DNA of 63,071 nucleotides, the filler included, from Reticulomyxa filosa (taxonomy: Eukaryota > Protista > Foraminifera): NCBI GenBank assembly GCA_000512085.1. It is 19 parts of 19 records of this genome, joined end to end, with 100 filler letters (N's around TTAATTAATTAA, not from the genome) between each part and the next. Parts side by side here need not be neighbours in the genome. Positions count along the whole stretch, not along the records: positions 34,551 to 50,929 come from ASPP01000523.1; 18 more parts are not named here. The stretch is one strand, 5' to 3'. Under the pieces are notes generated by a model. That model ran no database searches. It saw only the letters and a program-made list of their open reading frames with translations, and had not been told where the DNA came from. Position 1 is the first letter of the stretch; each line of letters begins with the position of its first letter. The position numbers and the translations under genes were made by a program. Positions 7,177-47,424 of this stretch are shown here, piece after piece.

Positions 7177-10100
7177 CTATTTCGTGCTGTCATCCAACAA
7201 CAAAAGAGTAATTTCTTTACATTTGTCATTTTGAAGTAAACCATTGATTATACGACTATTCACACATACACAGCATTATATTTATAAATGAAAAGTTTTA
7301 ATTTATCTTATCAGGTTTTTGTTTTGTTGAAATGTGATAACTTTAAACGGTTGATTTCATTGCTTGTACATTGAATTAAGTGCACCTTTGAAACGATGGT
7401 TTGATTTAATTGGTCTTTCAGCTCATTTACGCGTGTAAGTATTTGGTCTATTTCTTTTTTATTACTTTCCAACAATAGATTCTTTTCTTTTTGAAGTTTT
7501 TCTTCAAATTTTTTTTCCAATTGCTGCCCCAATTTTTGTTGTGATTGTTGGGCTTCTTGTTTGTTTTCTTGTAATTGTTTTTCTATATCTTTCTTTTGTT
7601 GTTCGATTGCATTCCTTTGCTGCTCAATTGCATTCTTTTGATTCTCAATTGCATTCTTTTGGTGTTCGATTGTGTTCTTTTGCTGCTCAATTTCACTTTT
7701 TTGTTGTTCTGCTATTCTCTTTTGTTGTTCCACTTCTCTCTTTTGTTTTTCCGCTTCCTTCTTTTCTTCGTCCAATTTTGTCAATTTTTCTTTTAAAATT
7801 TTCAATTCCTCTTCTGCTGCCTATTGTTTCATTACCCACGCTGACTTGTTCAAAGCCACTATTGACAAAAAAAACAAAGCAATGCGTTTGGCTCAACTGC
7901 AAGAAGAACCGCATGATCTTTGGCTGGCAAGTTCGTTGCGGGCATTGATGATTCACGACGGTCTTGTGTAATCTGTTTAATATAAAACAGCCATTCCCCC
8001 GTCAAACGAAGTTAACGTTTCGAAAGTGCGTTTCACGCATTTGGAATGAATTATAAGCAATCATATGTACATATATGTACAAATATATATTTATATATAC
8101 ATATATATAAAAGATTGATTTTTTTTTTTTTTAAATTAAATCGAAACAGTAAAATCTACTCACTTCAGTTTGTTCAGGGATAGCTGACTCTTTACCTTTC
8201 TGAATACTGGTTCTGTCCACCTGCCCGCAAGTAGAAATAAAAGCGTTAGGACAATGGAGGGGGGGGAGGGGAAAGAGAGAAACTGAAACAAACAAACAAA
8301 AAATAACTTTTCTACGGGCTTCATAGTCGTATTCGACATGTTGTGTTTTTTCAGTATCTTCATCAGACAGGTGTCCCTTATCACCAACCGCTTTCATCAA
8401 CGATTGCTTTCGTTGATGTTTTCTGCGTTGTTTGCGACTTTCGTCATCTTCACTGTCGTCCTCGTGCTCGGCTTTCAAAAAGGCCTTTGGCACAGCGACT
8501 GACTCTTTTCGAGCTTTCTTCGCTCTCTCCTCGCGAATGCGTTTGGCTTCCCCCGTGTTGGCACCATCGTGTTCAAACAGATTGGGTACCGCCCCTGACT
8601 CTTGCCGGCCGTGTTCCTTCTGGGCACGTTCTTGGCGTTTGGCCTTTGCCTCTTCTGTTTCGCTCGGGTCCTCATCAAATTGTTGGGATCCTCGGTGTTT
8701 GGCAGGCTTTAATATATAAGAGACATCACACATATCATCCCCATTACAAAAAAAAAAAAAGGAGGGAATTATTTCAATCAATCCATTTCAAAAAAAAGAT
8801 ATAAAAAAAAAAAAAAAAAAATACCTTTTCGTTATTGTCATTGGCTTGGTCGTCTTGAGCGGTAGCATTATCTCCAGTGTACCCATCATCAAAAAAGTTG
8901 AGAGGCACAACAGGGGTAATTTTTTTTGTGTGGGCTTGTTGTTGCCTTTCTTCACGTTTTTTCTTTGCATTTTCGTCCATAAATGTCTCTTCGTCCTCTT
9001 CCTCTTCAAAGTCCTCGTCCGCATGCTCTTCATCTTGGCCAAACATCTGTTGTGTCGTCATCATGCCGTTGGCGTTGCCTTGTTGCTCAAAGTTGCCATT
9101 CGCTTCGTCTTGCTCTTCCTCCTCTTCTTCTTCTTCTGCGTCTTCGCTCGTGAAAAAGTCTTTGGGTTTCGCCACTGATGATTGTCGTCGACGTTGTTGT
9201 CGTTCTTCTCTGTCCTCTCTTTTGCGTTGGGCCTGACCCATAAATATTGTATTTGTATACATTTATACTCAGATTTATGGTATATATAATTTATGTCAAA
9301 TAGTTGTGTCATATGATATGTATAGTGTACTAATATTATTATAAGTAAAGTATTTAAAAAGCCATCAACTTCAGCTGTCAAGGCCTCCGGATGGACACCG
9401 CTGTTCATCATAGGCGCCGCGTTGGCAGCTACTCCTTGTGCCGTCAGTTGGTTGATTGGTTGTGCAGCTATATTTTTCGATATTTTGCTGATATGCAATG
9501 CTTGGCGATTGATTTTGTCTTGCTGTTGTATGTTTTGTATTTTTTTTTTTTTTTAAAAAAATAATAAAAAAGACACTTTTCAATCACAAATATCTATTGC
9601 GTTCATTTTACTTTGCAATTTTCACATAAGTTACATAGAAAAGTGCGACAAAGAGTCTTTTCTCACACTCAATGCTCATACCAAATCATAGATTTCATTC
9701 CGCAATTGGAAATTTTCATCTCGAAGTTCATTCACCAATTCCTATTTGTTTATTTTATTGGACACGAGTCATTTGTCGTGTATGGACATATCACTGTCTT
9801 CTCGGACAGTTAAATAAAACAAGCTTTTTTTCTTCCTCCCCCCCCCCCTTTTCCTCAATGTTGATGGTGTTTATTCACCGTAGGTACATTAATAAAAGTA
9901 ATGTTTTTGTAATCTAAGCAAGCAAGTAAAATTATACAAACAAGACAATAATAACACAAACAAACAAAGTGAAAAGCAAAACTCTCAATTCGAAATTTTC
10001 CAAAATGGTTCTTTGCGCCAGAGCTTCTGCCTTTCGGCGCATTTCCTTGTCTTCAAGTTTGTCAGAAGGGATATTATCGCCAACTGACGTATCTTGTGGC

Positions 10101-35449: not shown

Positions 35450-36200
35450 TTAAACCATACGGGAAGTAAGTTTTCTTTTGGAGAAAACACGGAAGTGTCG
35501 TCGTGTAGGAGCACGTGGAACTTTGAATGGATTTTTGAAACGTAATTCGGGTTCCTGTTTTTCAAATATTGGATGAATAATTACTACATAAAAAAAATAT
35601 ATATATTGTTTTTTACATACCAAAAACTGTCTCACACGAGGTCTTTTCACTTGATGGTCACTGATTTCACGGCAATCAATGATGTGAATGTTATCAGGTT
35701 TTGCCTTGTGTCGTCCAGCCATATCATCGTATAATTTTTGTGCTGCGGAGTCAACTGTTACATCTCTGTACTCTCGATACATGTTGTGGATCCCCATACG
35801 AGAGCGATATTTCAACCAAAAACCAAAGTTTTTCACTCGTGTGGGGTCCCGATCCAAAATACGGTGCACTGCCAATATCTGCAATTATTTGTTATTTCGT
35901 CAAATCTTGTATTTCAAAAGTCCGGAAAATCGCAGAAACCACTATTTTTTTCTCTTTAAAAAAAATAACTAAACTTGGCCCTGTGTTTTCTTGACACGGT
36001 CAAAGTTGGCCATGTGTTTCCAGAATAAAGATTTCGCTTTGACATCATTTCTGCAAAAAACTTTCAATTTGTAGATTTTTGGGTTTTTGTTTGTTTCTGT
36101 TGGCTTTGCGCGTCCAACAACTACGAAATATCGTAACTATTAAGAAAAAAATTTCTTGTAGGAAAAAAGACAAATAAAATACAAACATTCTTACTGGCAT
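35450..36200 (-). CDS. RPL18A: 60S ribosomal protein L18a (eL20); exons 36200-36195, 36136-35975, 35878-35621, 35554-35450
   Basis: MPLRYFVVVGRAKPTE...KIYKLKVF..NDVKAKSLFW...VKNFGFWLKYRSRMGIHNMYREYRD...RPRVRQF. Three GT-AG introns keep the frame. Confidence 0.95.
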
Positions 36201-37855: not shown

Positions 37856-40800
37856 TCAAAAGTTTTCTTTGTGCAGAATGAACGTGGTATTGGTACTGAA
37901 ATCAGTGAAATTGCCACATTGTTTCTATGTTTATATTTATTACATATGTGAGAAAAAGTTCCATGAAAAATTTGAAAAGAAAACAAAGCTAAACCCAAAG
38001 GACTAGAACACTGAACTTTTAGATCGCTGGCAACAACGTCTGGGCCACAGAACATAACGCCAATTGTTTCTCCACAATGCTGTTGTTGAATGGATGAAAA
38101 TAATTCAGGCCATTTAGGACGGCCATTATGGATGATAATGTCTCCAAGAGAGACTGGTTCTGGTTCTGGACAACATAAAGCCCGGTAGATGTCAATCTCT
38201 GAGAAAGGAGCTTTTTCTCTTGCAACAGTACGACTTTTGTCGTGTAGCGTATCATCATAATGTGGTCCCCATATTGCCAAATCGGTTTGTTTATCGCCAC
38301 CACTGTCCAATTCGCTAGGATCAAATGTTGGATTCTTTGGTGCACTTGTGACGAAAATGTGCATTTGCAGCACTTTGGATTTCATTTGTTCCGGATTTTT
38401 TCGTCGCATATCGTACAGTTCATCTTCGGCTTCTTTCAAAGTTCTCACCATAAATCGATAGGCAGCAAGTTGTTCCCAATTAACAATCCACGCACAATAG
38501 GCATGATCGGGAAACGAGTGTCCGACCCCACGTTTGAATCGATAGTACACAATGGATTGCAAAGTTGCACGTACCGGGGTCACTCCAATGCCCGCACCGA
38601 CAATCATCGCAGTCCCATATGCACCCAAGTGCTGTGTAGGAGCTGCCATGGGGCCATCAATACATAATAAGCTACGCCCATCCGGTCCAATTGTCTTGGG
38701 CATTTTGTTCACACCGTCCCAATGAAAAAATTCAGCATACGCTTTTTTTGGTGACATGGCCTGCAAAAATGTCTGTAATCGTCCGGTCCATGTACCTTCT
38801 CCCTGTTGTGTATACGTAGACAAATGTATTATCAACTGATTGGTTTTGCAGTTTGTATTTTTTGTGTTGTCTTGTGTCCGCTTTTGTTTTCTTTTCCCTC
38901 TTCTTCTCCTTTTTGTCTCTTGCATTGAAAAGCAAGTATGCATACCATGTTACGTATGTGCAATGTTAAAGTCCTTTGCTCTGGAGGTGATGAAATAGTG
39001 AAAGGATGCCATTGGAACTTGGTGATCATAGGACAATTTAAAAAGATATATTGACCTTCTTGATGACGACGAATGGGCCCCGTTTTTTCCAATTCCAAAC
39101 AAAAGACCTTTGCGTATTTATTGTTCATGTGCGTTGCGCTAATCAAACCAACAGGCTTGGATGCTTTTACTTCCCTGGTGATGCGCTCAATAAAGTACAA
39201 TGTACCAGGTACCAAGAACCATTTCCAATAGTTTGGATTCCACGAATTGCGGCCGTGAAACAACAAGGCCAGGAAAAAAAGGACAAACAAATGATGCGTA
39301 TACCAAAACATTTCAAACTCACCACGACGAACTGCTTCAAAGGACGTGCTGTACAGCAGCTGCATCGCCACGATGATGATGACACCACTAATCCAAACTG
39401 TTGGGCCATACACCGCCTGGTACGTTGCTGGAACTTGGGCGTAGTGGTTGTAGTGTGCCCATGTATGCACCAATCCTCCAAACGCTGATAAGAAGGCACA
39501 CACTTTGTGAAATTGAATGGCTTTGTCCAACGGCATAAAGCTCAAACAAAATCGGGCTGCTCGCGATACTGCCCTTTGGTCGGTCGATACATTGTACAAA
39601 TACGCGATAAATGACCTATCGTTTTTTTTTCCTTTTAATGTGGTGAACTCCTTGGATTTGACTTGTTTTTCGAAGTTGCAAAAACGCACCCCTTAAAAAA
39701 TTTTGTTGAAAATTTAACCTGCACACTGGCAAAACAATAAAAGCACAGTTAATGTCGCACAAATTTCCAAACATTTTGGCAACAGTGAACCAACTCCCAT
39801 AAAGACGTCCCCCATTTTTGTCATAGAGCTGTGCCAATACTTTTTGGTTCGCAGTTAATGAATTCACCGTAGCGCTGTTTTTACTTTGTAACATACTGCT
39901 ATACTTGGCACCAGCAGTATTACCACTTGAAACCACACTTTGATAATACGCACACCGTTCACCCACGTAAATTATGTTAAACAGCAAATACGCGGCCAAA
40001 AATGTGTATTTTCGCACTTTCGATTGTTGACGAAGTTGCTTGCACCATCCATACATCCAAGCCAACCAACCCATGCAAAGCAAATATTTCGTGATTTTAC
40101 TTTTGGTGCTTTGCGATGATTCTTTTTTATTTTCCTCGGGCTCGTATTCTTCTTTGTTCTTTGTTTTTGTGGATTGTGTGCTTTTCTTTTAGAACAATCA
40201 AATTCCAAAATAAGGTTTCTGAAAAAATCATTAAAAAAAGGGGATTGTTTTTTAAGAATGGACATGAGAATCTCTTAACACTCCATGCCAACAAGTCAAA
40301 AATGGCAGTAACCGTCCACATCCCACCCGATAATGCAGTGACGAGAGTAAAATAGGGAATTACACCAATTATCAAATAAAATAATCCACGCAATGGCAAT
40401 CCTCCTTTCGAACGTTTATGTCCATATCTGTAATGAAAAGCTAACGTCACGGGTGCTGTCAATCGTTCAAAAACACGCAAAAGAAAAATGCACTTTGCCA
40501 TAGAAAGAAATTAGCTCATTTTTTGTATTGATAAGGAAAATGAAGTTAAATAAAAACAAACCAAGAGCCAAGCAGTAAATCCCACATATTGTAGACAATG
40601 TTTTGTTCGCATGTAATGCCGGACTAGCAGTTCGATGTCCCCATGTTAATGCACTCAAGCCTAAAAAGAGGCTTACCAGGGCAGTACACAATGCCATATA
40701 ATTCGCCACAATCCCTTTTATTTTTTTTAACAAAAAAAGGATTTGCGAATGGCGTGTTAAAAATTCTTAAAAAAAAAATAGACAGATCACGTATTCGTGT

Positions 40801-41312
40801 ATTGGCTAATGAGTAACAAAAACACCGGCAAAGAAAAAAGTTATCAGCTTTTTCATTTAAATAACTGATTGAAATTTTGTTTTTTTTATATATGGTCAAC
40901 ACTTACCAAAGCGAGTTTTAGCATTGGGATTAAATTTTAGATTTAAAACATCAACCGAATAATAGATTTCTGCATTTGGATCTGCTGATTGTTCTTGTTC
41001 CGTAAATTCAATGTGCTTGTTGGCTGGATTACTTTCTTCTTTTTTTCTTTCAGGGATTGGTGGATGAGCACGCAAGGCAATTTGCACTTGAGGGGGTACT
41101 GGGGGCATTCGAAAAGTCTTTGGTATGCTTGTTTTTTCGTATCGCTTCACGTACGTATTTGGAAAATATCCGCGCTCACCATTCCTTATTCCTACCCACC
41201 AACCACTCTCGTCTTCTTCATACACGTCAATAATATCCCCGACTTGAAACGATATTTGTCCATCATCTTCTGCGTTGTACGTGTACTCTGCAATCACTTG
41301 AAATAAAGCCAT
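37856..41312 (-). CDS. NADPH oxidase fusion protein: SH3 + Pro-rich linker + p22phox-like domain + NOX (gp91phox-like) core, 899 aa; exons 41312-40907, 40714-40562, 40455-40280, 40158-39719, 39615-38946, 38802-38017, 37924-37856
   Basis: Six GT-AG introns give one 2700-nt frame. SH3: AEYTYNAEDDGQISFQVGDII...GWWVG...GYFPNTYV. NOX: LPVCR, heme His pairs FHKVCAFLSAFGGLVHTWAH and FWYTHHLFVLFFLALLFHG, FAD motif QWHPFTISS, NADPH motifs GAGIGVTP and FCGP, C-terminal HKENF. Confidence 0.92.
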
Positions 41313-42826: not shown

Positions 42827-45636
42827 TTAATTGGAGTCAGTGACCAAGTAATAGGTAATAGTTCTTGGTTGCATGGATACATCCAAAGATAGCAAATACG
42901 CGTGGCTTAAGGTAACTGGGACATAAGGTCCATCTTCGTGACTCAAATAAGCTTTGTCGGACAGCCCAGTATAATACAAAGAAATTTCAAGCGTAGTGTT
43001 GACAGTAGAGCTCAAAGGATTGAAAACCGCAATAAAACCTTTCTCTGACAAGGAAGGATTGGCATGCATAATGCAATCAATGAATTGATTGTCAGGTCTT
43101 CGAACGTGAATTATATCACTTATCAAAATATCACGATGTTTTTTATAAATGGTTGTCCATTTGATAACAACATTTTTGGTATCCTCTTTTCTCGTACAAA
43201 CATACACATATCGTCAATGCGAAACAAAGAGAAGAAAAAAGTGCAACGAACAAAAAAGAAAAGGAAAGGACATAGTTACCATTATCATACAACTCATATC
43301 CACGAATGGTAGGTGCAACTGAGTACAAGAAGTACATTCCCAGAGCCCAATCATAATCTGCAATATTTTGTGACAAAGGTTCAAAAGTAGAATCTGGCGG
43401 GCCATCGTGATAAGGGATCATAGGCATAAACATCCAACCGCTTGTCGGTACTCGTGTGTAGCTTGTATCGTACATGAGTTGTCGTGCAATTGTCTAATCA
43501 TCGCAAAGCAAGCGAAGTAGTTATTGACATTTTCCAAGGCGATAAACAAGCAAACAAATCAAACAGACCATTTCCTCCCAAAGAGGCAAAGTGTAGGTAT
43601 ATTCAGCATAAGGAAATTTGTTTCGATTTCCACCGACGTAATAATAATTATCGGGAGTATGAACATATACATTTTGGGCTTTCATTTGAATGTAAAATTG
43701 GTTTTGCAAATACTGTTGTCGAAATACACTGTCATTTAAATTGTCATGATATTTGTGAGTCAAAGACGCACATGAAAAGCCCGGATAAGGACCATCCGTT
43801 ATCACCATGCCCATGCCTATTTCGATATAATTTTCAAAATATCCAAGTATAACATCTGACCAACCAGACGCATAGCATTCGCCTGTGTCATGTACGTTGG
43901 GATTGGTGTCTATGCGTCTTTTTTTTTTTTTTTTTTTTAACAACACATAACAATAGTAACAATAAAAAAAAAGCAAAAATGAAATAACAGCAATAAATAA
44001 TACGTTCCTCCCCCCTCTTCTCATTTCTTTTCCAAACAAAACATATATTCAGTGACGTTTCTAGCCATATCAATCAAGTCATATCCTCCCACGATGACAT
44101 TCTTCGACGTTGCATATTCAATAAGCGTTTGATAATGATCTAAATTTGCTTGACTCGTATTTTCCATGTTGAAGCCACAGCCAAAAGAAAAAGCCATCAG
44201 CTCGAATCCTATTGTCGACAGATCAAAACTCGTAATGAAAAAAATATGTACTGATTATTACACATACCGGTTTCATTGCATTGGTCAATCATTCGATAAA
44301 CCATTTCGTCACTTAGATTTGTGGTTTGTGTGTAAATAGGATTTTCCATGATACACGGCGTCAAATATTTCATAAGTCGTCTCTGGCCCATTCCAAACCT
44401 CTCCATATCGGCAATACTTTTGGAATCGGACATTAACTCCAAAACTCGAAAGGATTGAAAGGTGCCATTTTCAGTTCCAGGCAGTTCCGGTGCCAATCGA
44501 ACCGCCCAAACACTTTGTTCGGACTGTGGTGCATAAAATACACGGACACAAGGCTGATACGAGCCTGGTGATTGACTTTGCCCTGGTTGTGTGTACCATT
44601 GAATTTCACTGCTGTGAGCCTTAACAACAATACGTACACACATACGCACAATGCGTCATATTTACATAGCAAGCCAAATTATATCAATACAAGCGCAAGT
44701 CACATAAGAATCATCAAACAAGCAATTAATTGTTTCATACAATGTCCGTGTCAAGGAACAGCAGGCCTTGTTGATAACCTCCCCAAGAACCGCTGGAAAA
44801 AGGCGGGTTTACACACAACAGCTCTGGTTCCACATACGTTATCCACACGTTGTCAGTTTCAGTTGCATTCACTGACGTTATGCGAAGCATTTTTGTCATT
44901 ATTGGCATTCCTTGTAACATTTCATATCTCACGATCACACGAATATTCTGGATGTTTTTATTTTTTATTTTTTTAGTTTTATGTTGATCACACATGCAAG
45001 AAATAACCTGGATTTGCGCAGGTGCATTCGCTGGCGGTGCAAAAGTTGCTTCAAGTGCCAGTCCCAAAGGGGGCCATGGAATGTCTTTTGGAGAGTGTCG
45101 TGTGCCCGGTATCCATCTTTTTTTTTTTTTTTGAAGAAAGAGAATGTAAAAAAACAGCAGTGGAAACAATATATGAAAATAGTACATGCACTTAACTCAT
45201 ATGGCTTGTACAAATCGGTAGATGCTTCGTAAGACACAAATTGAAAAGAGTAGGACGTGTTAGTTTGAACGTTGTCCGGATTGATCCAACTGAGGTTCAG
45301 ATATGAATGAGTGACATTGGATTTAAATTCAATACCACCTATTCCATACATTCGACCATTCAGGCCTATCTGAGCTTCTGGTACCATTGCTCGGATTGCT
45401 GCGTTGTAAGGCTCTTGCAAGTGTGTGTTATACTCGATTGTGGCAAAATTGGGAGAGAGTAGAAATTTTCGAGATATTAATTCATTCGATAGCTCCAAAC
45501 ATGCCAAACCGTTTATTTTACATTTTGTTAACGTCACGTTTGAAAAAGAATAAATATCATTTATTAGCCAATCTTTCACTCCTTGCACAATTTGTCCGAT
45601 ACAAAACAATAATAATAAGGAATTTACTCGAAGCAT
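42827..45636 (-). CDS. Secreted alpha-galactosidase-like glycoside hydrolase (GH36/GH27 clan-like), multi-exon
   Basis: Signal peptide MLRVNSLLLLFCIGQIVQG. Motifs DWLI, LSNELISRKF..PNFAT, FQSFRVLELMSDS, ENPI, DQCNETGFELMAFSFGCGF, GGYDL, DGPYPGFSCAS and GWMFMP...YH are spread over spliceable exons. The family call is from recall of these motifs. Confidence 0.7.
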
Positions 45637-46218
45637 TATTATTTTTTTGAGAGATTGCAATTAAAAATAGGAATTTTTTTACTTCTTTCTTCTTCAGTTT
45701 TTGATATTTCACACTATTGAGCTCAAACAGTATGGATATCATTTGCGTAACTTTAAGTTTGAAAAAATTTGTTTTTCACTTCATCATTTTTTTTATTAAA
45801 GATGAATTTGAAATACAAAAAATTTTATTTTTTTTAAACATAACTTTGTTTAATGCTAACAAAACAAGACAATTTTGAATTTATACTTGCAAACAAGAAA
45901 TTAAAGAATCGTTTCCACATGATTCATTTTTATTATTTGATCATCCCAAGAAATTTCTGAGATTTTTGTGAACCTTCTGTAAATTTATGAAAAGTTGTTC
46001 TACGTGCAAGTTGTTCAAAAATTGAAATACGTGCCCACAAAGAAAATAGGATAAGTCGTCACATGCAATCAAAAATTAAGATTTAATTTTGATTCTGCAA
46101 AAAGAAATGATTTGAATCGTTCAGTAGACCTAGAAACACTGATTTAAAGGAGCACGGCAAATCCAGGAAAAAAACTAATAGTTTCCCCTCAAATTGAAGG
46201 CCAACACTTGTAAGTCAA

Positions 46219-47424
46219 ATGTTCCCCTTACAATCTTTTTCAACAATTGGTCTAAAGAAATATAAACTTGAATTGAGCACTGATATTCAAAATACGTTGG
46301 ACTTTAAGAAACATTGGAACGACAATTGGAAAAGAGCAAATGCGGAAGCAGCAAAAATAATTCAACAAAAATTGAACAAAAATAAAGAAGGATTGATTGT
46401 TGTCGCCAAAAATGTATCCGAATGGCCAAATAAACCAAATCAGAATTTAAACAAAAATGGTGATCTTTTGTTTTCATTTATTTCGTCGGTGAGCAGTGGC
46501 AAAACTAAAACAAAACAATTTGGAGAATATTGGTTATATGTGCTGAAAAAAAAGTTGGTGATATTGGAAGATATGGTGATTGATGGAAATGTGTATGCTG
46601 TGAACTGCGAAATCCAATGCCAAGGGAAAGTGAACATTACAACACAGCTTTTTGTTTCAGATAATGCTATTATCGATTCGAACTTGAAACAGGAAATTTT
46701 GCCAATTGAATGGAACACTCGATTGCATCATGACATCCCGGTATATTTGCAAGATCTCCAAGACAATGCAGAAGAATGCTTAGAAAATGAAGTCTTTGAT
46801 GACGCTATTCTGAATTTGCAGAAATGTTTGCAGATTTCTGTCGAGACATTTGGATGCAACCACGCATATATTGCTGATTCATACCACAAAATAGGTAATG
46901 CCAACCTTGAAAAGAAATTGTATGATAATGCAATTGAATTTTATAAAAAATCATTGGAACTGAGATTGGAACTTTTTGGGATCTATCATCCTCTTGTTGC
47001 CGATTCATACAACAATTTAGGGCTTTCCTTTCATGACAAAGGACAATATGACAAAGCTGTTGAATATTATGAAAAGTCTATCAGCATTGGAGTGGCGGTC
47101 TATGGAAATTATCACAAAGACATTGCCGACTCGTACTACAATTTGGGGGTTACCTATGATTCCAAAGAGCAGTACGATGCGGCAATTGAATGCTATGAGA
47201 AGGCATTGAACATAAGCAAAGAAATATTTCAAAAGGTGAATATAGACGTTGGTGATGTGAAATGGAATTTGGGAGCAGCGTTTGAAAGAAAAGGAGAGAC
47301 CGAAATTGCATGTAATTATTATGGGGAAGCATGGAAGATATTTAGCACGGTAGTTGGAGATTGGCATGAAGACACTGTGGAGATTAAAAAAATAATGCAA
47401 CGGTCAGCCGGAAAAACAATTTGA
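46219..47424 (+). CDS. TPR-repeat protein (kinesin-light-chain-type 42-aa TPRs)
   Basis: A 401-aa ORF with repeated H..(I/V)ADSY.NLG..Y...G.YD.AIEYYEK.L.I units. Confidence 0.85.
   Translation: MFPLQSFSTIGLKKYKLELSTDIQNTLDFKKHWNDNWKRANAEAAKIIQQKLNKNKEGLIVVAKNVSEWPNKPNQNLNKNGDLLFSFISSVSSGKTKTKQFGEYWLYVLKKKLVILEDMVIDGNVYAVNCEIQCQGKVNITTQLFVSDNAIIDSNLKQEILPIEWNTRLHHDIPVYLQDLQDNAEECLENEVFDDAILNLQKCLQISVETFGCNHAYIADSYHKIGNANLEKKLYDNAIEFYKKSLELRLELFGIYHPLVADSYNNLGLSFHDKGQYDKAVEYYEKSISIGVAVYGNYHKDIADSYYNLGVTYDSKEQYDAAIECYEKALNISKEIFQKVNIDVGDVKWNLGAAFERKGETEIACNYYGEAWKIFSTVVGDWHEDTVEIKKIMQRSAGKTI

Follow-up and report, generated by a model that had tools for sequence, protein, structure and literature searches.

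A candidate single-gene NADPH oxidase in the foraminiferan Reticulomyxa filosa, predicted to join an SH3 domain and a p22phox-like membrane domain to the NOX core

The membrane protein p22phox is an obligate but separate partner of the NADPH oxidases NOX1-4. The interface between NOX2 and p22phox, as seen by cryo-electron microscopy, lies between transmembrane helices TM3-TM4-TM5 of NOX2 and TM1 and TM4 of p22phox, and according to the same 2022 paper no paralogues of p22phox have been reported (PMC9568551). The taxonomic range of the system has been considered narrow: p22phox, p47phox and p67phox are described as restricted to opisthokonts (Massari et al. 2022, PMC9421330), and a p22phox candidate in Dictyostelium has been doubted (Kawahara and Lambeth 2007, PMC2121648). 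The locus considered here is found on the minus strand, at positions 41312-37856, of a 63,071-nucleotide stretch of DNA (the window) from the foraminiferan Reticulomyxa filosa (assembly GCA_000512085.1), in the part of that stretch taken from record ASPP01000523.1. We read it as one seven-exon gene encoding an SH3 domain, a domain homologous to p22phox and a NOX core, with packing of the p22-type domain against the oxidase in cis as the likely mechanism, and we give this reading a probability of roughly 0.82. A natural p22phox-NOX fusion is not reported in the full-text literature that was searched; subscription-only papers, among which an earlier report may exist, lay outside that search.

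The predicted product is an 899-amino-acid, ten-helix flavocytochrome that would consist, in order, of the SH3 domain and its linker, the p22-like domain, a second linker of ~45 amino acids, a six-helix di-heme NOX core, and the FAD and NADPH domains. With human cytochrome b558 (NOX2, encoded by CYBB, plus p22phox, encoded by CYBA; structures 7U8G, 8GZ3 and 8KEI) it would have in common the six-helix di-heme core, the FAD and NADPH domains, the four-helix p22 fold with helices 1 and 4 on NOX helices 3-5 (predicted here, observed there) and an SH3-polyproline logic on the cytosolic face, while EF-hands are found in neither. It differs in being one polypeptide rather than two, and, compared with NOX2, in that the oxidase itself bears an N-terminal SH3 domain and a proline-rich linker. 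Relative to human p22phox, the loop between helices 2 and 3 is ~22 amino acids shorter in the family profile, helix 4 runs into NOX instead of a proline-rich tail, and in the window copy Glu53 is replaced by His and His94 by Tyr.

Other described systems share single elements of this design. The fungal oxidases NoxA and NoxB are likewise calcium-independent and need a small membrane partner and SH3 scaffolds (PMC9421330); in fungi, however, NoxD (the p22phox homologue), Pls1, NoxR and Bem1 are separate gene products, and they are likened to the present domains by description only. In DUOX1, the M0 helix sits where p22 binds NOX2 (PMC9568551) and is likewise a membrane element in cis with the oxidase at the p22 surface, but it is a single helix unrelated to p22phox, and DUOX enzymes further differ by their EF-hands, their peroxidase-like domain and their dependence on DUOXA as a partner. 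Among protists, the NOX of Naegleria gruberi likewise has an SH3 domain in the catalytic chain; there it is inserted in the C-terminal part, inside the NADPH-binding domain, whereas that of the window protein is N-terminal, and no p22 domain is listed for the Naegleria enzyme (Zhang et al. 2013, PMC3591440). The organisers p47phox and NOXO1 likewise use SH3 domains to join the oxidase with proline-rich partners, but they combine tandem SH3 domains with a PX domain and a region for autoinhibition, while the window protein has one SH3 domain and no PX domain; the likeness is thus one of analogy only.

In the rebuilt gene model, the seven exons are read as a single frame with a total of 2700 nucleotides, equal to 899 codons and a TGA stop. 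This reproduces what an earlier note on this DNA had claimed, namely an 899-amino-acid frame that starts at 41312, stops at 37856 after H-K-E-N-F and is interrupted by six GT-AG introns, and the junctions 40907/40714, 40562/40455 and 40280/40158 fall where that note had placed them. Every one of the six introns has GT..AG borders; they are 92-192 nucleotides long, and their GC content, 0.26-0.35, is lower than that of the exons. Three codons 5' of the ATG at 41312 the frame is closed by a TAA. Homologous proteins are matched by the exons one after another, and the coordinates meet exactly at the junctions. Searches with the window were run exon by exon, while the joined translation served for frame, length and hydropathy; the hydropathy profile has four peaks, at amino acids 137-155, 175-193, 210-228 and 224-242, ahead of the six NOX helices.

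Exon 1 (41312-40907) carries the ATG, the SH3 domain, the proline-rich linker and the first p22-like residues, T-R-F-G, and it ends in a phase-1 donor whose position after R-F-G is identical in a related R. filosa copy on record ASPP01008223.1. Exon 2 (40714-40562) encodes p22-like helix 1, an outer loop and the first half of helix 2; exon 3 (40455-40280) encodes the second half of helix 2, a short cytosolic loop and helices 3 and 4; and exon 4 (40158-39719) encodes the end of the p22-like domain (N-K-E-E-Y), the cytosolic linker of ~45 amino acids and NOX helices 1-2. Exon 5 (39615-38946) supplies NOX helices 3-6, which include the heme histidines, and opens the FAD domain (H-P-F-T); exon 6 (38802-38017) completes that domain and encodes the one that binds NADPH (G-A-G-I-G-V-T-P, C-G-P). 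Exon 7 (37924-37856) supplies the C-terminal 22 amino acids, ending in H-K-E-N-F, and the TGA; this C-terminus is collinear with those of the relatives P0003, P0004, P0010 and others, and the donor of intron 6 (38016-37925, GT..AG, 92 nucleotides) at 38017 is backed by homologues. An alternative intron 6 at 38011-37896 (junction 38012/37895), which gives a protein of 891 amino acids, was rejected on account of the gap of 7-8 residues that it leaves relative to the homologues.

The catalytic portion is recognised in Pfam by matches of exon 5 to Ferric_reduct (PF01794, E 2.6e-16) and FAD_binding_8 (PF08022, E 1.6e-11) and of exon 6 to NAD_binding_6 (PF08030, E 1.2e-12). The heme histidines H428/H442 and H499/H512, on helices 3 and 5, have spacings of 14 and 13 as in NOX2, and their columns are invariant or nearly so in the family alignment A3. 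The cofactor motifs H-P-F-T, G-x-G-x-x-P and C-G-P and the terminal K-E-N-F are all present in the translation. Among PDB sequences, exon 6 matches NOX dehydrogenase domains, and exon 5 matches NOX5 (4e-30) and NOX2 (8e-28) about equally; placement in a NOX subfamily by these scores was dropped because of that near equality. Judged by sequence, the window protein appears to belong to the NOX / ferric reductase superfamily, with oxidase activity as its predicted function.

The SH3 domain at amino acids 7-56 (41145..41294, minus strand) is detected in exon 1 by the Pfam models SH3_9 (E 5.4e-14, 52.2 bits, cut-off 30), SH3_2 (E 2.3e-13, 50.0 bits, cut-off 21.8) and SH3_1 (E 1e-12, 47.9 bits, cut-off 22.9). 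The usual ligand-binding positions can be made out by eye: A-E-Y-T-Y holds the aromatic pair, the RT loop is acidic, and G-W-W and F-P-x-x-Y are both present. A proline-rich linker at amino acids 68-91 (41040..41111, minus strand), read from the translation, contains R-M-P-P-V-P-P, which fits the class I consensus, and P-P-I-P-E-R, which fits that of class II. In the alignment A2 of family N-termini, an SH3 domain is present in 36 of the 50 tested, and one proline column after it is nearly invariant. The earlier description of an "organiser-type SH3" holds in part: an SH3 domain is present, but it is not that of a p47phox homologue, since it is single and no exon has a Pfam match to a PX domain. 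An organiser-type role for it may be proposed by analogy. The claimed absence of EF-hands was borne out by a Pfam scan, which gave no match in exons 1-4 at E up to 10; EF-hand NOX proteins occur only among the more distant matches to the window NOX. One family member has a WW domain (E 1.6e-05) in its N-terminal region in alignment A2, WW domains being, like SH3 domains, proline-binding.

Between the linker and the NOX core lies the p22phox-like four-helix membrane domain, at amino acids ~133-250 (40144..40916, minus strand). It begins at the end of exon 1, covers exons 2-3 and extends five codons into exon 4, and introns 1-3 interrupt it. Exon 5 was used as the query against 1.84 billion representative proteins, and the best 150 NOX matches were examined. 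Many of the best matches are 800-950 amino acids long, with the NOX match beginning near residue 350-430; eight of the first ten relatives scanned have an N-terminal SH3 domain at E up to 0.1 (two weakly), and in 58 of the best 150 NOX proteins an iterated local hidden Markov model finds a block of ~115 amino acids ahead of the NOX core. Window exons 2 and 3 match the blocks of these relatives at collinear positions.

A profile built in this analysis from an alignment of 54 blocks (A1) was searched against all PDB sequences, and it finds human p22phox at E 5.4e-12 (8kei_A) and 3e-11 (7u8g_B / 8gz3_A). Positions 2-114 of A1 align to p22phox residues 5-131, across all four helices, and the only gap, of 22 residues, falls in the loop that joins helix 2 to helix 3. 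The next PDB match is a rhodopsin at E 0.23, leaving p22phox ten orders of magnitude ahead of any other PDB membrane protein. On this profile, exon 2 occupies positions 6-49 (30.7 bits) and exon 3 positions 53-108 (49.4 bits), and positions 50-52 correspond to the residue that ends exon 2, the codon divided by the intron and the residue that opens exon 3, with no insertion or deletion at the junction. At its two ends, the terminal T-R-F-G of exon 1 fits the start of the profile, and the invariant Glu of the family's end motif sits in N-K-E-E-Y at the start of exon 4. The four alignments to p22phox that the earlier note had made by eye are in the same register as the profile alignment. Searched singly, the window exons reveal less. 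The suggested check of the hydrophobic block against the Pfam family Cytochrom_B558a (PF05038) gave no match for exon 2 or exon 3, and exon 4 has nothing significant in Pfam; among PDB sequences, exons 2 and 3 find no p22phox and return a chance eIF4E match at E 1.1, and their feature search of the ESM Atlas yields one weak row (0.78, Cg6151-P).

Structure prediction was carried out on the block of the homologue P0010. From alignment A1, AlphaFold2 predicts four helices with a predicted local distance difference test (pLDDT) value of 94.9 and a predicted template modelling score (pTM) of 0.85. When this model was compared by Foldseek with 350,542 PDB chains, p22phox chains occupied ranks 1-3 (template modelling score, TM, 0.71-0.75; probability 1.00), the runners-up being copper-storage and other bundles at TM about 0.56 or less, and a shape search of the ESM Atlas placed the cytochrome b-245 light chain cluster at the top (TM 0.77). 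The structural comparison that had been proposed, made here with a homologue's block, thus ranks p22phox first in both the PDB and the Atlas, and both kinds of similarity whose absence was to count against the original claim, in profile (E 5e-12) and in fold, were found. The conserved positions of the block coincide with the p22phox core residues Trp9, Glu53 and Arg90: Glu stands at the Glu53 position in at least 90% of the family, and Arg is the consensus at the Arg90 position, where window exon 3 also keeps Arg. In human p22phox, Glu53 and Arg90 are listed as sites of chronic granulomatous disease mutations, with a predicted part in keeping the p22 core intact (PMC9568551). Helix 4 is followed by amino acids 251-295, which contain no PxxP and continue into NOX helix 1; the PxxP motifs of the window protein precede the p22-like domain, at amino acids 68-89. 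Profile and predicted fold together support the four-helix block as a p22phox homologue at the level of the family.

The joining of this block to the oxidase is visible within a single exon. In exon 4 a single open frame closes the p22-like domain and carries on through NOX helices 1-2, and the p22-NOX fusion is therefore independent of any single splice. In the relatives P0010 and P0006, uninterrupted open reading frames of 2490 nucleotides (on a 2738-nucleotide contig) and 2667 nucleotides (on a 2840-nucleotide contig) run from the SH3 domain to the NOX C-terminus; these contigs come from run assemblies and have the size and layout of mRNAs, and several further members lie on contigs of 2.8-3.4 kb. 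The related R. filosa copy on ASPP01008223.1 has segments resembling exons 1 to 5 in the same order and on the same strand, at 43-81% amino acid identity (52% for exon 2 and 67% for exon 3, whose equivalent keeps the Glu). That copy lacks intron 4, its introns 1-3 coincide to the codon with those of the window gene, and its nucleotide similarity to the window is confined to exons. Exon 4 is 56% identical over 147 amino acids to the R. filosa protein ETO25896.1. Pfam, the family profile, collinear relatives and uninterrupted open reading frames thus all agree with the original claim that SH3 domain, p22-like block and NOX share one reading frame.

The closest match of all, P0001 on a TARA scaffold (L003:1863-4659), is 66% identical over exon 5. 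At its locus, a p22-like block lies in an intron-free open reading frame directly upstream of the NOX frame on the same strand; the gap of ~55 nucleotides between them is probably an intron, and no SH3 domain is visible in the frame that holds the block.

How the fused domain might act was approached by complex prediction. When the block of P0010 was paired with the NOX membrane domain of that protein, the score was 0.63, compared with 0.00 for the best of 3 controls; that mark is reached by 51 of 78 solved complexes and by 2 of 108 mismatched pairs. The P0010 runs share at least 89% of their contacts, with a partner pLDDT of at least 74. In the predicted interface, helices 1 and 4 of the block (residues 1-35 and 86-98) lie against NOX loop A, the outer half of NOX helix 3, the whole of helix 4 and the start of helix 5; a prediction of this kind shows likeness, not binding. 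The proposed topology, with a cytosolic SH3 domain, four helices, a cytosolic linker and NOX helix 1 entered from the cytosol, is consistent with the gene model.

In the mechanism that we propose, the p22-like domain would fold back in cis so that its helices 1 and 4 pack on NOX helices 3-5, and this packing, at the p22phox site of NOX2, would stabilise the heme domain without a separate subunit. Electrons would pass from NADPH to FAD, through the two hemes and on to O2, as in every NOX. Regulation would not be by calcium, because EF-hands are lacking. The SH3 domain and linker may serve as a docking module for regulation, which would either inhibit the enzyme itself or bring in a proline-rich activator, and are read in this way because no proline-rich tail follows helix 4. 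The SH3 domain would then assume the docking role of the C-terminal proline-rich tail of animal p22phox with the polarity reversed: the oxidase would carry the SH3 domain, and a partner or the enzyme's own linker would supply the putative PxxP ligand. It is in this sense that we infer the "self-assembling" oxidase of the earlier note.

Several points weigh against this reading. The homology to p22phox depends on a profile built in this analysis: when the 54 blocks were scanned singly, only 5 touched PF05038 at E up to 1 (best 0.0066), and full-length P0015 matches that family at 17.1 bits, under the cut-off of 25. It is because single blocks match PF05038 so poorly that the domain appears to have escaped annotation. 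The complex score may reflect the model's memory of solved NOX2-p22phox structures, and it was obtained for the homologue P0010 rather than for the window protein. Strict class I or class II PxxP consensus sequences occur ahead of the block in ~22 of 54 relatives, fewer than half. Since the Pfam p22phox model stays under its cut-off, single members weakly match other small membrane families (COPI_assoc, Cg6151-P), four-helix bundles are common and several Atlas rows reach TM 0.6-0.7, the block might instead be a generic four-helix membrane bundle, similar to p22phox by convergence or composition and with another role, for example in targeting. However, the profile match to p22phox runs from end to end, p22phox comes first in two fold libraries, the conserved positions are those of the p22phox core, every block is joined to a NOX and the interface predicted for it is the one already known; a generic bundle thus seems highly improbable, and homology to p22phox remains the preferred explanation of the block.

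The window copy itself presents a further difficulty, in that exon 3 has His (40390-40392, in F-H-Y-R-Y-G) at the near-invariant Glu53 position. The replacement of a core residue, together with the existence of a related R. filosa copy at 43-81% amino acid identity per exon, which makes paralogy possible, would fit a decaying or silent paralogue, the family architecture being real and the window copy no longer working. Such decay appears quite improbable, however, for a copy that retains 899 codons without a stop over seven exons, intact cofactor motifs and all four heme histidines, and whose similarity to the other R. filosa copy is limited to exons, as purifying selection predicts. A working single-chain oxidase is the reading that we retain.

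The remaining points concern the number of genes. At the ASPP01008223.1 locus (L004:8681-11021) GenBank calls two, an SH3 gene of 185 amino acids and an "NADPH oxidase" of 288 amino acids, ETO25896.1, and for the window locus a single mRNA is what we infer from genomic sequence. The locus could accordingly hold two adjacent genes, one for an SH3 and p22-like protein (exons 1-3) and a separate NOX that starts at a Met in exon 4, the products of which would form an ordinary two-subunit cytochrome b558. Read-through of intron 3 does meet a stop, at 40127, after 50 codons (open reading frame 40127-40501), and the M-G-W at amino acid 274 in exon 4 resembles the M-G-N-W with which NOX1-4 proteins start. 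Yet this stop and the internal Met would be merely ~35 nucleotides apart, and exon 4 carries the invariant Glu from the end of the p22-like domain in the same frame as NOX helices 1-2. Relatives with one uninterrupted open reading frame from SH3 to K-E-N-F on mRNA-sized contigs also argue against a division. The R. filosa annotation, for its part, leaves the two p22-like exons (at about 9399-9548 and 9706-9876) unannotated; ETO25896.1 begins exactly at the equivalent of exon 4 and looks like a truncated automatic model, and the contig ends inside the NOX core. Two genes are therefore improbable at the window locus, and one gene with a fused product is favoured.

A search for this domain architecture beyond the window, of the kind proposed in the earlier note, indicates that the design of SH3 domain, p22-like block and NOX recurs in Rhizaria and other protists. 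Named members or cluster mates include R. filosa, Cercozoa sp. M6MM, Phyllostaurus siculus, Paulinella micropora, Amorphochlora amoebiformis, Picozoa sp. and Rhodelphis marinus, so that the named lineages comprise foraminifera, Acantharea, cercozoans, a chlorarachniophyte, Picozoa and Rhodelphis. A FastTree phylogeny of 77 NOX cores, which is rough and unrooted and excludes rows with incomplete cores, contains a 17-row clade (support 100) without the block, the sampled members of which have an EF-hand, a PAS domain or no extra domains. On the other side of the tree, the block is present in 49 of the 60 rows, and the remaining 11 all have N-termini too short to hold it. A search of proteins with the block profile found one unnamed protein of 105 amino acids and no free p22phox; its word filter and length window probably hide distant relatives, and the result carries no weight on whether protists have free p22phox.

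Two other proteins from these searches depart from the common design. In the predicted protein P0038 (2323 amino acids), Pfam recognises Ferric_reduct three times, FAD_binding_8 three times and NAD_binding_6 twice, and P0038 represents either a tandem multi-NOX polypeptide or merged neighbouring genes. P0089 (797 amino acids) has a NOX core with an N-terminal PAS domain (PF00989, 1.5e-10) in place of SH3/p22 or EF-hands, and appears to be a further regulatory variant.

Covalent attachment of a p22phox homologue to the oxidase across a conserved family would change the opisthokont-only picture of p22phox, and it would offer independent evolutionary evidence for an ancient p22 site on NOX helices 3-5. 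Current annotation misses the p22-like domain, which falls below threshold in Pfam and has its exons left unannotated in the R. filosa record, where the locus is split. A natural single-chain cytochrome b558 could ease heterologous expression and structural work on subunit-dependent NOX enzymes, and with it the role of p22phox for the catalytic subunit becomes testable by deletion or by splitting of the chain. More speculatively, the NOX-p22 partnership may be far older and wider than the opisthokonts: a p22-type domain would have been tied to a calcium-independent NOX prior to the divergence of Rhizaria, Picozoa and Rhodelphis, and possibly even prior to the Diaphoretickes/Amorphea split; we hold this to be possible, though on balance doubtful. 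If true, the free p22phox/NoxD of animals and fungi and the fused form would be related by one ancient gene fusion or fission, and the SH3 and proline-rich N-terminus of the fused enzyme would replace, in reversed polarity, the interaction between p22 tail and organiser.

Other features of the window lie on both sides of the oxidase locus. At 42827-45660 (minus strand), a run of open reading frames on one strand (110-231 amino acids) looks like a multi-exon gene, with Pfam matches in none of the five that were scanned. An open reading frame at 35453-35884 (minus strand) matches ribosomal protein eL20 (Ribosomal_L18A, E 1.6e-14) and is probably one exon of a spliced gene. At 46219-47424 (plus strand), a single open reading frame of 401 amino acids carries TPR_12/TPR_10 repeats (E 1.5e-45) of the kinesin-light-chain/NPHP3 type.

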